From positions 1,019,561 to 1,083,560 of the forward strand of contig BFEA01000021.1 of NCBI GenBank assembly GCA_003427395.1: a DNA stretch of 64,000 bases, given 5' to 3'. The position numbers were made by a program, and so were the translations under genes. A model generated the notes under the pieces. The model did not search any database. It was not told the DNA's origin and was given only the letters and a program-made list of their open reading frames with translations. The DNA is from Chara braunii (taxonomy: Eukaryota; Plantae; Charophyceae). Shown piece after piece: positions 11,277-39,826 of this stretch. Each line of letters opens with the position of its first letter. The stretch's first letter is position 1.

Positions 11277-11330
11277 GTAGGCAGAGAGGGAGAAGAGGAC
11301 AACAAACGAGGGGCTGTGACAAACTGTTTT
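11277..11330 (-). repeat. 3'-flank fragment of the hammerhead repeat family
   Basis: CGTAGGCAGAGAGGGAGAAGAGGAC.ACAAACGAGGGGCTGTGACAAACTGTTT nearly identical to 13016-13068. A further inverted fragment lies at 12583-12612. Confidence 0.8.
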
Positions 11331-11362
11331 TTTTGGGAATATCATATATATATAGTATATAC

Positions 11363-12577
11363 CATACCTGTGGCGCATCGCATGCAAGCGAGCTCCGCAG
11401 GTGCGGTGCACAGCGCACGTGCAAGCATGTGTGCGCACGTGATGCGGCGCACCCCAATAAATAGGGTTAAAAAAAAATTCGGAGAGGGCTGTGGCTGAGG
11501 TAGCCAATGATGCCCCTCCTGAAAAATCTAAGGGCACAGAAAAACAATTGGGCTCACGTATTCCTTGTTGAATAGTCTTTTTTCCCGAAGGACCCCAGCA
11601 GTGCATCTGCAAGGGTCCCACACTGCTGGGGTCCCAACATCTCAAGAGACGTTCAGCAAAGTTCGTGTCAGAGGCGGAGCAGGCCAGGATCATATGTTCT
11701 GGATCCGAAGTCAGGTCTGTTTTCCTACGAGCAGTTATGGGTTACAGGTTACAACTGCTTGCTACCGTAGCTCTCTTTCTTTTGTTTCGTTTTCCTACGA
11801 GCAGTGGCCCTAAGGGCCTTGCTCCACTCATCACTACTAGCACAAAAGACAAAACAGAACATATGGTGGCGTATGGTTCCATGTTCTAGAAGAAGATTCA
11901 TTCCTCTTTCTTTTGTTTCGTTTTCCTACGAGCAGTGGCCCTAAGGGCCTTGCTCCACTCATCACCACTTGCACAAAAGACAAAACATATGTCGTCGTAT
12001 GGTTCCATGTTCTAGCAGAAGATTCATTCTAGTTTTGGCACATTTGGTGAGTAGTGGAGGGAAGACCTGAAAAGCGCGTGGAAAAAAAAAAAAAAAAAAA
12101 AGAGTTGGCCTGCTAGGGCCCAGAAAATCGTGTGCTCACTGCTCAGTGGTCCCATAACTGCTGAAACAGGACACCATACATACTTGTGTGTCGTGACCCT
12201 AGCATGGGTATGAGCATTGCCTCACCGTGATTCATGGTGAGGAGGCCCTTGCTAGTTATCTGCAAGGCCCTCTCGGCTAACCCGCAGGGGTTTTCTTATT
12301 AATGTTAAGGAGCTATTGTCTGCTATTTGTTTGCTCTCTCTCTCTCTCTCTCTCTCTCTCTCTCTCTCTCTCTCTCTCTCTCTCTCTCTCTCTCTCTCTC
12401 TCTCTCGCGCGCGCGCGCGCGCGCACCCGCGTGTTCTCGCACATCACAGCTGCTTTCTTCTCTTTTTTTTTCTTTTTTTTTTCTTTTTTTTTTTCCTTTT
12501 TTTTTTCCTTTTTTTTGTGCATCGGTGACCAGCGCACCGCACCGCATGGCGCACCGCACACTTGCGCCGCAGGTATG
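11363..12577. mobile_element. Non-autonomous hAT-type DNA transposon
   Basis: 15 bp TIRs CATACCTGTGGCGCA / TGCGCCGCAGGTATG. 8 bp TSD GTATATAC / ATATATAC (7/8). Contains a ~130 bp tandem duplication (11771-12030) and (CT)n. Confidence 0.75.
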
Positions 12578-12987
12578 ATATATACGGTTTACCAGGCAGC
12601 TCTGTTTGACTATATATTTTTTCACAAGAGTATCAGAGCGCAAACGCGAACAAAAAGGAAAAAAGAAAGAAAAACAAGAAAAAATGAATTCAGTTTCTTA
12701 TCTTCTTCCTTATAACTCCCCCTGTTCACAACCTCTTGCATACAAGGCCGCCCACGTGGATGTAGGTTGAGCAGCGGCTGCCCCCACCCCCGTGTGTCAT
12801 ATCGACCCACTTGCACACAGCCAAAAGGCAAAGAGGCAAAGAAAAGAGGAAGGGAACAGCCAAATATAACAGAACAGGGGGCTAAAAAACAGATCCCAGA
12901 TGACAAGTCCCACATGCAAGCACCGCCCCAACACACACAGGCCAACGACGGGACAAGACCAACCAGGATGTCAAAACATTCTTGTAT

Positions 12988-37197: not shown

Positions 37198-37255
37198 GCA
37201 TGACTGTGCCGAACAGACTGTTTCGTCGGACTTTCACCGACTCATCAGGAGGTTG
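37198..37255 (-). ncRNA. Hammerhead motif, 5'-truncated (perfect core and stem II, no substrate strand)
   Basis: Reverse strand: CAA-CCTC-CTGATGA-GTCGG-TGAAAGT-CCGAC-GAAA-CAGTCTG. Downstream CACAGTCATGC resembles the 18.8 kb copy. Confidence 0.8.
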
Positions 37256-39771
37256 TGTGTGAGTGAGAGAGAGAGAGAGACAGAGTTTGCATGGGTAGGT
37301 TGCCTCCGCCATTCATGCATCAACTGTCGCATTCATTTTTGCGAGCGAAGCCATAACAGGTCATCTAGTAGAATATAATATATTACTCATTTCCAGAATA
37401 TGAAAGATTTTCTGGATAACAGTAAACAAGGAGACAAGCAGTGGCACAAAAACAGTGTAGCGGGTAGACAGGTGGGCCGAGGCAGATTGCTGAATTCTGT
37501 CCCAAACACTGGAGGGTTTCCCCACTCTGTCGATTGCTCAGAGCCTTCTGCGTTTGCTCCCGTGTAAAAGAGGAAACAGGCGGGGACGGGGAAGGGGATT
37601 TGAGCTCATGATCTATGTATCAACAGCTGAATGTGCGCAGCACTCAGCATCTGACCTCGTGACCAGTTTATCAAATGGCCTACCATCACAAGAGATACGC
37701 AGCCTTCAATTTAGGAAGTAGATATTGCAGGTAAAATAAAGGAACCGAAGTTAACGTTTGCTTTTGCTCAATCACACTGTTGTTGTCAATATAATTCTCT
37801 GAGGCCACGAGAGACTGGATTAGCAAGGAGCCAGTATTGGGGGACCAGAGCACTTTATGTTTTAAAATACGTTTGTTTCGTTGTTCTTCCTTTCTTCCTC
37901 AGCCTTCTCGACTCCCAACCCCGTCTCTTCTCCCCCGATACCGATTCCAACTCCCATACCGATTCCAACTCCCATCCCGATTTCCATCCCCGATCAACCC
38001 CTTTCCCCGATCCCAATTCTGTACCCCTCTTTACGCGCTTCCTCTCTCCGATCCCGATTCTTCCCGAGTTCCGACACAGTGTGGGAGAGGAGGGATGGGG
38101 TTCCGAAGCAAGGGATGAGGGGGGACGGAGGACAGAGTCGAGATCTGGGGAGGAGGGGAGGGGGGGAATCGGGATCGGGGAAATGGAGCACTGTCGGGAT
38201 TGTACGGGGAAGAGGGAGAAAGATTGAGACCACCGGACGAAGTCGGAGTTGGAGGGAGGGAAAGAATCGAGATCGGAAAGGGATAAGAGAGAGAGAAAGA
38301 GAGAGAGAGAGAGAGAGAGAGAATACAGCATCAGGTAAGTCTCCAAAGCCGCGGCTGGCACTTCACTATTACGCGTGTGTGTGTGTGTGAGAGAGAGAGA
38401 GAAAGAGAGAGAGAAAGACAGAGAAAGAGAGAGAGAGAGAGAGAGAGAGAGGTCGACGTGAGAACTCGGGATCAAGTCGGGATTGGAAAAGGGGTGACGA
38501 ACATGGAAATCGGGATGAGTACGGGAAAGAAAATTCGGGGTGAGAAGTGGGAGATGAGATGGACTCGGGATAGGAGACGTAGCGAGTCGGGATGGAGAGA
38601 GAGGCGGGGAGGGGGAAGGGGTGGCGATTGTGAGAGGATGGGGGAGGTTCGGAAGACGAGGGAGTCCGAAGGAAATTGGTGTGTGTGTGTGTGTGTGTGT
38701 GTGTGTGTGTGTGTGTGTGTGTGTGCGTGTGTGTGTGTGTGAGAGAGAGAGAGAGAGACAGAGAGAGAGTAGCGATGAGCAAAATCGATCGAATTTTCCA
38801 CTATAACGCCGAAATATGATTGCTACACAGCCGTGTGTGTGTGTGTGTGAAATCGAGATGGAGTCGGGATAGAAGACGTGGGGAGTCGGGATGAAGAGAA
38901 AAGGGCGGGGCGGAGGGAGGACGAGTGTGGTGTGTGTGTTGGGAGTCGAGATCGAGTCGAGATAGGACACATGGGGAGTCGGGATGAAGAGAAAAGGGCG
39001 GGGAGAAGCGGGAATGACTGTGGTTTCTTTTTTCCTTTTTTTTTCTACAACAAAAAGGGCTTATGCCATCACCATTTTCGTGTGTATTTTTTTTTATTTT
39101 TTTTTGGTCTTTTTCAGTTCACGCATCTTTTTCGTTTGTTTTTTTTTTTATACAAGGACAACGACCTTAAGGATTATTAATTTTATTGTTTTTTTTTTGG
39201 GTCTTTTTCCGTTCGGACATGTATTTCTTTTTTTTTTTTTTTAAAGCGCGACGGCCTTGAGATATCAGTTTTAAAAAAAGAGCGACGGCCTTGAGATATC
39301 AGTCGGGATGAGCAGGTCGGCAACCTCACTTTTCGGTTCGAGGCTTTTTGTGCCCAACTCTGTTTTTTCTTCACCTAAACACACACACACACACACACAC
39401 ACACCCCGCATTACTAACCTTCTGCGATTGGCTCCTTTCTCTTGCTGGGGAGCCTATCACCCGCAACAACGGAAAGGGGGTTCCTAAAGGAAGGCCTTGG
39501 AAAACAGAACCAAAAAAAAAACGCTGCAAAGTTGCCCCGGCATTCTTCGAAATGGAGAGACGGACGAGAAGTTTTCATTGTCGCGCGGGATAGAGAGAGA
39601 GAGAGAGAAAGAGACAGAGAGAAATAGATTAGATACGTGGATACAGCAGATACATAGATTAGGGAGAGAGAGAGAGAGAGACAAAGAGAGAGAGAGAGAG
39701 AGAGATTGGATACGTGGATAGATAGAGCAGATACATAGATTAGGGTGTATGTCGTTTGTCCCTGTGTAAGT

Positions 39772-39826
39772 GTGTTTCGCCAGACTTTCACCGGCTCATC
39801 AGGAGGTTGAACCTGGACAGTTTGTC
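39772..39826 (-). ncRNA. Type III hammerhead ribozyme motif with intact catalytic core (intron 2, sense to SEC63)
   Basis: Reverse strand: GACAAACTGTC^CAGG-TTCAA-CCTC-CTGATGA-GCCGG-TGAAAGT-CTGGC-GAAA-CAC. First stem I pair is mismatched and stem III is only 3 bp. Confidence 0.82.

Follow-up and report, generated by a model that had tools for sequence, protein, structure and literature searches.

Eight decayed or truncated pieces of a hammerhead-bearing repeat were found in a 64,000-nt stretch of Chara braunii DNA (hereafter the window), four of a form named A-type and four of a second form named B-type. Type III hammerheads of plants occur in LTR retrozymes and in viroid-like RNAs of flowering plants. 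The hammerhead retroposon family described here is real and is unusual for a green alga; related ribozyme-bearing Penelope-like elements have already been reported for C. braunii. The reading we favour (probability roughly 0.55) is that each piece is an insertion that either was dead on arrival or has decayed since, and that the source is an abundant, non-coding, non-LTR retroposon family, recently active and probably mobilised by Chlamys-type Penelope-like elements.

A sequence-only reading of this DNA had proposed five hammerhead loci. The pattern CTGATGA-N17-GAAAC, with at most one mismatch allowed, matched the window five times, at exactly these loci (0.39 matches expected; five reached in none of 100 shuffles), and the consensus proposed for them proved correct as well. 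Copy-versus-copy blastn comparisons gave E values of 1e-9 to 1e-24. A sixth, decayed ribozyme copy that was absent from the earlier list was detected (34k; Table 1), and two fragments said to carry the flank without the ribozyme are genuine. Rfam Hammerhead_3 matched four of the five loci (18k, 31.4 bits; 13k, 30.8; 39k, 29.5; 37k, 26.5), although all scores fell under the gathering cut-off of 48.5. At the gathering threshold, no hammerhead was found in the whole window, U6 being the sole Rfam match. The two assembly gaps bear solely on the estimate of copies per kb; the one at 34306-34550 is artificial and its sides are continuous, since they share an exact 24-nt terminal overlap.

Table 1. 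Pieces of the hammerhead-bearing family and assembly gaps in the window.
Feature	Position	Strand	Remarks
A-type copy 13k	12991..13106	-	ribozyme 13058-13106, 3′ module 12991-13057; nhmmer E 6e-31
A-type fragment (11.3 kb)	11278..11334	-	98% identical to 13k
A-type 3′-terminal fragment (12.6 kb)	12580..12617	+	last ~35 nt of 3′ module
Old A-type copy 29k	29007..29155	-	76% identical to 13k
B-type copy 18k	18757..18888	+	Hammerhead_3 31.4 bits, below threshold
B-type copy 34k	34040..34150	+	heavily decayed; (CA)n before; ends 156 nt short of the gap at 34306
B-type copy 37k	37156..37262	-	(CA)n on either side; core and helix II intact
B-type copy 39k	39762..39847	-	leader after (CA)n; 10-nt 5′ arm, GUC, intact core, covarying helix II
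Assembly gap	34306..34550	.	outside all copies; last 24 nt before it identical to first 24 nt after it
Assembly gap	36024..36377	.	within a G-rich repeat array; outside all copies; nearest copy ~780 nt away

The A-type is defined by a common 3′ module of ~80 nt and by (TA)n flanks; its terminus is ...GTTTGACGA, followed by (TA)n. The B-type has a distinct 3′ module, a 5′ leader of ~40 nt and (CA)n flanks, and (CA)n comes after its terminus, ...GTGTATAGYGRA. All four A-type pieces of the window lie within TA-rich DNA, and CA-rich DNA contains or adjoins each of the four B-type pieces. A conserved flank of ~75-80 nt had been said to follow the ribozyme; this holds for 13k and 29k, but 18k, 37k and 34k carry another 3′ module. 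The 3′ ends are constant and the 5′ ends vary, falling at loop 1 in 37k, in GAAAC in the 11.3-kb fragment, in the 3′ module in the 12.6-kb fragment and 1-2 nt past the predicted cut (+2) in 13k; of these four truncated copies, only one starts at the predicted cut. TA-rich DNA precedes 13k, and degenerate TA-rich DNA follows its 3′ module. The 11.3-kb fragment begins within GAAAC/3′ arm after (TA)n and an A-run, and it breaks off within the 3′ module at (GA)n; the 12.6-kb fragment, inverted relative to it, has TATATA on either side. When the DNA upstream of these two inverted fragments was compared by blastn, no significant match was obtained; a 22-nt similarity was visible by eye. Copy 29k contains an internal duplication of 11 nt, and GATATATAA comes after its 3′ end. 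For the B-type, the matches of 39k and 18k begin at the same CATCAG (in 39k directly after the (CA)n), and 34k begins 9 nt further in. This common start suggests a defined B-type 5′ end ~40 nt before the cut, and a unit of ~130 nt.

TA-rich flanks like those of the A-type are also found in Stowaway/mariner MITEs and in Helitrons, which would fit a DNA-level element (a TA-target MITE or a Helitron) whose likeness to a hammerhead is incidental. This reading, or that of a chance motif, is highly improbable. By eye, no inverted repetition links the two ends of the B-type unit, and the A-type 3′ end lacks CTRR. The pieces share a fixed 3′ end and are truncated stepwise at the 5′ end, and the expressed consensus described below has the full three-helix fold and all core bases. 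The excess of pattern matches over the number expected argues against chance.

LTRs, a primer-binding site, a tRNA head and terminal inverted repeats were sought on the copies and in the window, and none was found. The earlier statement that no LTR, primer-binding site or tandem arrangement is present is therefore upheld within the window. The copies showed no flanking direct repeats and no second ribozyme within 2.5 kb, and the window lacks the tRNA-Met primer-site motif. No polypurine tract was recognised in the A-type module, whose single purine-rich run is on the antisense strand. ARAGORN found no tRNA and the only small-RNA match of Rfam on the copies was the hammerhead, so nothing like a classical SINE head was seen. 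No reverse transcriptase or endonuclease gene was detected by Pfam among the ten longest ORFs of the window, and a protein search with the open frame crossing 13k gave no match. Traits of Penelope-like elements were found: a ladder of 5′ truncations, (CA)n or (TA)n flanks, and head-to-tail joints in RNA.

That a type III hammerhead resides on a dispersed, non-LTR, retroposon-like family is supported. The core CUGANGA...GAAA, with the A15.1-U16.1 pair and an NUH triplet, is present; three copies (13k, 37k and 39k) keep it intact, and it carries mutations in 18k, 29k and 34k. The cleavage triplet is GUC in 18k and 39k and GUU in the expressed A-type consensus. The three-helix layout, with loops closing helices I and II and helix III open, is visible in 18k and 39k, no single copy of the window being wholly intact. 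The missing 5′ arm was supplied by the consensus of RNA reads (this A-type upstream consensus was sought in the window and is absent from it). Joined to 13k, it gave a complete three-way hammerhead as the minimum free energy structure, with a predicted stem III of 9-10 bp, stem I, the CUGAUGA core, stem II and GAAA; the folding energy was -26.9 kcal/mol for an 87-nt construct and -22.7 for a 63-nt trim (z = -2.3 versus shuffles). As proposed earlier for stem III, all 10 nt of the 5′ arm at 39.8 kb are complementary to the 3′ arm at 13.06 kb. Across the six copies, pairing was 66.7% in register and 31-45% when the partner was slid. Stem II had been said to covary, and a cleanly compensatory replacement of U-A by C-G was indeed seen, together with a single change from G-C to G-U, but significance is absent over six copies (the observed level was reached by 63 of 500 shuffles). 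The core, helix II and loop 2 are identical at 29 of 29 positions to a type III hammerhead from a marine metagenome (L007) that scores above threshold (53.6 bits). Metagenome matches to the core-helix II pattern were rejected as family members, all 16 being bacterial or phage hammerheads. On the folding model, the consensus ribozyme is predicted to cleave itself.

This prediction does not extend to the copies of the window: because of truncations or core mutations, none of the six ribozyme copies is able to cut. Two are truncated at the 5′ end, one at the 3′ end, and three have mutated cores. Copy 13k retains the core, helix II and the 3′ arm, and is without the 5′ arm and the cleavage site; 37k, being truncated within loop 1, also has no cleavage site. 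Copy 39k stops right after GAAAC, its helix III being reduced to 3 bp. In 18k the 5′ leader and helix I are present, as are both arms (the 5′ one complete and with GUC), and the B-type 3′ module and (CA)n follow; G10.1 and G12 of this copy, however, are mutated (GAAA to AAAA) and its helix II is broken. In 29k the core has changed from CUGAUGA to CGGAUGA and helix II has decayed; the remaining core-mutated copy is 34k.

Expression was analysed in poly(A)+ (oligo-dT) RNA-Seq data from the same organism, with reads mapped to positions 12900-18899. Family read depth was 1436/467 (X21) and 3203/949 (X22) versus ~50 on host exons, that is, 30-60 times above these exons. About 75% of the family reads were sense, the library strand being calibrated with a spliced host gene. 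At least 100 distinct RNA contigs carry the family, the family base at position 13040 is found in 96-117 distinct contigs, and family reads make up an estimated ~0.04% of poly(A)+ reads; the high abundance claimed for the repeat is thus borne out. Copy 13k differs from the expressed consensus by a single base, at 13040, which indicates that the family is recent. This copy lies, in sense orientation, beyond the final exon mapped for an expressed host gene, and low-depth reads of the same strand extend to it. Read-through from the A-type 3′ end into (TA)n was seen in hundreds to ~1500 reads per run (loose ends 12991, 12993). Hundreds of reads cross the predicted cut in poly(A)+ RNA and no excess of read ends was flagged there, in a sample that mixes in dead copies; cleavage in vivo, which is predicted, may be inefficient.

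The RNA reads also contained joints that go back from the 3′ end (12985-12991) to 5′-truncated starts (13060-13119), with fillers of varying length that, among those listed, are mostly TA-rich. Such head-to-tail joints would be produced by a circular RNA of the retrozyme type, in which two hammerheads excise a unit from a tandem transcript, the unit is closed into a circle by a ligase, and reverse transcription then uses that circle as template. Two other points agree with this scheme: cleavage alone would sterilise an element with one ribozyme and circularisation would restore the ribozyme, and type III is the hammerhead type of retrozymes and viroids (PMC4918200, PMC7761336). We nevertheless regard it as unlikely. 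The many joint positions, the 5′-truncated downstream unit and the variable listed fillers are those expected of independent insertions, not of circles or rolling-circle copies; each joint was read on one strand only, as single loci would give; and the window holds no tandem pair. The joints therefore fit genomic head-to-tail clusters in microsatellites better than circles in these libraries. Since the libraries were prepared with oligo-dT, circles would be under-sampled, and the circular-RNA test is weak in both directions.

Another alternative is that the pieces are not a separate short family but 5′-truncated 3′ ends of the published autonomous elements Chlamys-2_cBra or PLE-X. A canonical 3′ hammerhead is described for Chlamys-2_cBra, and frequent 5′ truncation, (CA)n targeting and, in C. 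braunii, a very high copy number are reported for Chlamys elements (PMC8557442). A 4587-nt RNA contig bears the element at its very 3′ end (X9 record 8), and conservation among the A-type reads reaches at least 30 nt beyond the ribozyme on its upstream side, both of which fit such an origin. The 4.6-kb contig may, however, just as well represent a host mRNA whose UTR contains the repeat, and the shared CATCAG start of the B-type copies suggests a defined 5′ end and a ~130-nt unit. On balance this alternative is rather improbable, if a serious one.

Under the favoured reading, a short non-LTR family, the RNA intermediate would be the ribozyme-sense strand. Target-primed reverse transcription, the priming mode we infer, would copy this RNA starting at its 3′ end, which would explain why copies are truncated to varying extents at the 5′ end. 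The microsatellite included by read-through at the 3′ end would most likely base-pair with a nicked microsatellite of the same kind, resulting in homing to, and head-to-tail build-up in, such repeats. The hammerhead, ~40 nt from the 5′ boundary of the unit, would most likely trim the element RNA from read-through or tandem transcripts; some copies would start at the cut for this reason, and these are sterile because the 5′ arm is lost. Reverse transcriptase would most likely be supplied by a Chlamys-type Penelope-like element, of which the family would be a non-autonomous derivative or a truncated 3′ end. There are counterpoints to this partner: the hammerheads published for Penelope-like elements belong to the minimal type I and differ from type III with its long helix III (PMC7761336), and (TA)n has been reported as a target of Naiad, not of Chlamys.

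Several of these features have precedents. 5′ truncation is frequent among Chlamys elements, whose targets are (CA)n and (C)n and whose copy numbers in C. braunii are very high (Craig et al. 2021, PMC8557442); canonical hammerheads occur in two C. braunii groups, in one of them at the 3′ end, and Chlamydomonas has non-autonomous, head-to-tail Chlamys derivatives such as MRC1 (PMC8557442). The window family resembles Chlamys-2_cBra/PLE-X and MRC1 in its hammerhead (shared with the Chara elements), 5′ truncation, microsatellite targets including (CA)n, head-to-tail multicopy insertions and very high copy number, and shares the Chara species. It differs in that no RT/GIY-YIG gene adjoins the window copies, the B-type unit is apparently ~130 nt, and the A-type targets (TA)n. 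Its ribozyme is a classical type III hammerhead with a helix III of 9-10 bp, its likeness to the published Chara hammerheads being one of description only. The suggestion that the family is undescribed is consequently doubtful, since hammerhead-bearing Chlamys elements with microsatellite targeting, 5′ truncation and very high copy number in this species were published in 2021 (PMC8557442).

Like the LTR retrozymes of plants (Cervera et al. 2016, PMC4918200), the family is non-coding, non-autonomous, abundantly transcribed and of the green lineage, and carries a type III hammerhead. The term retrozyme, as used for plant LTR elements, does not apply to it: the defining LTRs (~350 bp) and tRNA-Met primer site are missing, as is a 4-bp duplication, and the unit is far under 600-1000 nt. 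The ladder of 5′ truncations and the microsatellite targets indicate target-primed, not LTR-type, integration. Metazoan non-LTR retrozymes and pseudo-LTR Penelope-like hammerheads (PMC7761336; 10.64898/2026.07.22.740005) are likewise short (150-400 nt), non-coding and SINE-like, with one hammerhead per unit. Monomers and head-to-tail arrays are common to the metazoan non-LTR retrozymes and the Chara family, dependence on Penelope-like elements has been proposed for both, and a 2026 preprint argues for the same, Penelope-like, origin of the animal elements (10.64898/2026.07.22.740005). The metazoan hammerheads, however, belong to type I, and many have a minimal helix III and cleave in a dimer-dependent manner, whereas the Chara family has type III with a stable helix III; and metazoan retrozymes are mostly tandem (150-400 bp units), whereas the Chara copies of the window mostly occur as dispersed monomers within microsatellites. 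R2, RTE and L1Tc likewise have a self-cleaving ribozyme close to the 5′ end, and in them too its proposed role is to release the element RNA from transcripts that read through from upstream (PMC7761336). The HDV-like ribozymes of these elements have a different fold and cleavage leaves the whole ribozyme on the product, while the type III hammerhead loses its 5′ arm, so that copies like 13k are sterile.

For the window alone the message is modest: its copies are dead and a host function is not evident. A broader interpretation, which we offer tentatively as a possibility, is that the family forms, in this streptophyte alga, a separate lineage of non-LTR 'retrozymes' ~130-170 nt in length, in which the 5′ end of the RNA used for transposition is set by the hammerhead and homing to (TA)n or (CA)n is steered by the 3′ module and microsatellite tail; this lineage would be the missing link from Penelope-like hammerheads to the type III hammerheads of angiosperm LTR retrozymes and viroids. 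The origin of plant type III hammerheads is debated; descent from Penelope-like elements has been proposed, and we know of no clear intermediate. A family from a charophyte, a streptophyte like the land plants, that combines a classical type III hammerhead with the non-LTR microsatellite homing typical of Penelope-like elements would put such an intermediate within the plant lineage. With thousands of natural insertions, the position at which copies start relative to the cut would reveal the role of the ribozyme in retrotransposition.

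The five hammerhead loci of the sequence-only reading were confirmed, by reading and by alignment, at the positions and with the sequence described; the interpretation offered with them is supported in part. The motif CTGATGA-N17-GAAAC, with at most one mismatch, matched five times in the window (0.39 expected), each match being one of these loci; none of 100 shuffled sequences had five or more matches. Comparison between copies with blastn gave E values of 1e-9 to 1e-24. When the whole window was searched with a profile, eight pieces of the family emerged, all within 11-40 kb: the five loci, two flank-only fragments and a sixth ribozyme copy (see the table, where ribozyme copies are named by their kb position). 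As claimed for stem III, the copy at 39.8 kb has a 10-nt 5′ arm that is exactly complementary to the 3′ arm at 13.06 kb. The claimed covariation of helix II held for only one clean compensatory pair, and 63 shuffles in 500 matched the covariation score over the six copies; pairing in register (66.7%, six copies) was clearly higher than in slid controls (31-45%). The Rfam Hammerhead_3 model reported four of the five loci, though their scores, 26.5-31.4 bits, fell short of the gathering score of 48.5, and no hammerhead match passed the curated threshold. These scores are low because the window copies are truncated and decayed.

Coordinates of the hammerhead family and of other features in the window
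Feature	Position	Strand	Basis or remark
Ribozyme copy 13k, A-type	12991-13106	-	
Ribozyme copy 29k, A-type	29007-29155	-	
Ribozyme copy 18k, B-type	18757-18888	+	
Ribozyme copy 34k, B-type, heavily decayed	34040-34150	+	Profile search
Ribozyme copy 37k, B-type	37156-37262	-	
Ribozyme copy 39k, B-type	39762-39847	-	
A-type flank-only fragment	11278-11334	-	Profile search
A-type flank-only fragment	12580-12617	+	Profile search
U6 snRNA, full-length match	20353-20453	+	Rfam, 76.8 bits, then T-run
Expressed spliced host gene	13656-14458 and 16812-17158	-	RNA; intron 14459-16811, GT..AG
Tandem array	28031-28501		233-nt units, 95% identity
Tandem array	27728-27956		91-nt units, 93% identity

No hammerhead copy touches an assembly gap, and the status of the gaps bears only on the estimate of copies per kilobase. 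Gap 34306-34550 is artificial, since its two sides overlap: the 24 nt on its left (34282-34305) exactly match the 24 nt on its right (34551-34574). Gap 36024-36377 lies inside a G-rich repeat array, and its two sides are ~80% alike. The flanks of gap 59370-59459 have the 11-mer ACTACTTGATC in common; from their sequence, this gap and 34306-34550 look like scaffolding gaps closable by overlap.

The family has two forms that differ in their 3′ module. A-type pieces (13k, 29k and the two fragments) share a module of ~80 nt ending ...CTGTTTGRC(GA) and lie in TA-rich surroundings. The distinct B-type module is common to 18k, 37k and 34k, and a leader of ~35-40 nt upstream of the ribozyme to 18k, 39k and 34k; these pieces lie within or next to (CA)n. 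The similarity of 39k and 18k starts at an identical CATCAG, in 39k directly after (CA)n, which hints at a defined B-type unit of ~130 nt. The 3′ end is fixed beside a microsatellite specific to the subfamily, and the 5′ ends form a truncation ladder. Such a pattern is characteristic of target-primed reverse transcription, in which case the ribozyme-sense strand would be the RNA intermediate. Neither LTRs nor flanking direct repeats were found around the copies in the window, a tRNA-Met primer site was absent from it, no tRNA-like head was found, the ten longest ORFs of the window included no reverse transcriptase, and no inverted repeats were seen by eye at the unit ends.

Two side observations concern the flanks. 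In B-type, a 9-bp hairpin between the leader and the 5′ arm (CCUGGGCAG ... CUGUCCAGG; 39808-39832 (-)) occludes the cleavage site and the 5′ strand of helix I, and the minimum-free-energy fold favours it over the hammerhead; on this model it may be a built-in off-state. The two A-type fragments are head-to-head, 1.2 kb apart, each with the same ~22-nt sequence (TGCGCCRCAGGTATG.TATATA) ahead of (TA)n, at 11340-11362 (-) and 12553-12575 (+). Noticed by eye and not by blastn, the shared sequence may stem from an old inverted duplication or be the tail of another (TA)n-ending repeat that served as target.

Judged by their sequence, none of the copies in the window is capable of self-cleavage. Copy 13k starts inside helix I, 1-2 nt past the predicted cut, and so lacks the 5′ arm and the cleavage site, while 37k starts in loop 1. 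In 39k the 5′ half and the core are complete, but the copy ends just past GAAAC, with helix III reduced to 3 bp. All three helices are laid out in 18k, yet G12 has changed to A (GAAA to AAAA), as has G10.1, and helix II is broken; 29k carries U4 to G, and transitions have decayed its helix II. Copy 34k is degenerate along its whole length.

RNA data of the same organism were mapped to 12900-18899 from two raw oligo-dT stranded RNA-seq runs (X21 and X22) and two assembled runs (X5 and X9). The latter two are RNA, since both contain a spliced joint from 14458 to 16812. This joint reads CT..AC, which places the host gene on the minus strand, and because first mates over host exons lay almost only on the plus strand, first mates on plus represent minus-strand RNA. 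In the bin of the 13k copy, the depth of first mates on plus and minus was 1436 and 467 in X21 and 3203 and 949 in X22, compared with about 50 for host exons. In these two runs, family reads amounted to 30-60 times the host gene, about three-quarters of them ribozyme-sense; their share of all reads is estimated at roughly 0.04%. Position 13040, which is C in 13k itself, was A in 98% of reads and in 96-117 distinct contigs, and was the sole position of 13k with an alternative base at 10% or more. The family is therefore expressed from many loci, with 13k a very recent copy.

At the A-type 3′ end the reads run into (TA)n (700-1526 per run at 12991), and upstream of 13106 they enter conserved sequence (366 and 987 reads). 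The reverse complement of this upstream sequence contributes a 5′ arm; it places GUU before helix I, and nine of its positions pair with the 13k 3′ arm, including two G-U pairs where B-type has A-U. The minimum-free-energy fold of this arm joined to 13k is an exact three-way hammerhead (-26.9 kcal/mol; a 63-nt trim of the construct gave -22.7 kcal/mol, z = -2.3). By predicted fold, the type III hammerhead of the expressed family is thus intact. The oligo-dT RNA-seq gave no sign of cleavage: read ends were not flagged as accumulating at the predicted site. Joints that go back from the A-type 3′ end lead to 5′-truncated starts at 13060, 13083, 13102, 13107 and 13119; the fillers, among those listed, are mostly short and TA-rich, and each well-supported joint comes almost wholly from one strand. 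This pattern suggests a number of distinct head-to-tail clusters within genomic microsatellites rather than a single circular junction. A true circular-RNA cycle, which would be compatible with the model that follows, is improbable.

In our model, the microsatellite tail of the RNA would pair with a nicked microsatellite of matching type and thereby prime reverse transcription, which would account for both the homing and the head-to-tail pile-ups. The hammerhead would free the element RNA from read-through or tandem transcripts, and cut RNA, if used as template, would yield copies starting at +1/+2, like 13k. Such copies would be sterile because a type III hammerhead leaves the 5′ arm behind; propagation would then require uncut RNA, or tandem units with the excised RNA re-closed. 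A Penelope-like reverse transcriptase would be the partner that copies the RNA. We give the whole package, priming, ribozyme trimming and Penelope-like partner together, a probability of about 0.55.

Chlamys Penelope-like elements, which are commonly truncated at the 5′ end, occur in partial tandems and target (CA)n and (C)n, have a very high copy number in Chara braunii; canonical hammerheads are described for two C. braunii groups, in one of which the hammerhead lies at the 3′ end (Craig et al. 2021, PMC8557442). Animal non-LTR retrozymes have been argued to be derivatives of Penelope-like elements (2026 preprint, 10.64898/2026.07.22.740005). The behaviour of the family fits this kind of element better than a plant LTR retrozyme, every one of whose structural hallmarks fails here. 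Two points sit less easily with this: the family ribozyme has the classical type III form and a long helix III, whereas Penelope-like elements are said to bear minimal type I hammerheads (PMC7761336), and A-type adjoins (TA)n, reported as a target of Naiad and not of Chlamys. The pieces might instead be merely truncated ends of published autonomous elements, an explanation that we consider unlikely; one 4587-nt RNA contig does terminate in the element, and it may represent either an autonomous element in full length or a host mRNA. As for the suggestion that the family was undescribed, related elements were already published for C. braunii (PMC8557442), but our literature search turned up no description of short hammerhead-bearing retroposons or of retrozymes in Chara.

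When metagenome contigs were searched with a core-helix II-loop 2 pattern, 16 hammerheads emerged, bacterial or phage, none of which belongs to the family. One marine metagenome contig (L007) has a type III hammerhead at 8190-8244 (53.6 bits) with 29/29 identity to 13k from CUGAUGA to GAAAC, so that helix II and loop 2 of the Chara family form a module that bona fide hammerheads also use. The likeness of L007, and of contig L014, may be due either to common ancestry or to convergence on a single helix II/loop 2 module. In a further contig, four type III hammerheads scoring above threshold lie within 2.5 kb (L015:10258-12786).

Elsewhere in the window, further U6 matches (62651-62751, 62526-62592, 50586-50646 (+), 56068-56123 (-)), one full-length but weaker (51.2 bits) and three partial, together with that at 20353-20453 point to U6-derived retro-copies or U6 pieces borne by repeats. 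Another dispersed repeat, unrelated to the hammerhead family, lies at about 14597-14698; it shows a both-strand pile-up of RNA reads (strand depths 52.6/57.3 in X21 and 143.1/151.6 in X22), 80-100 contigs and conserved loose ends on either side. Low-depth reads on the strand of the host gene extend downstream of it up to 13k, and the two host-gene ORFs tested showed no Pfam domain.

Although interest is tempered by the window copies all being dead and by the related elements published for C. braunii, the family is of interest for how type III hammerheads arose in plants.
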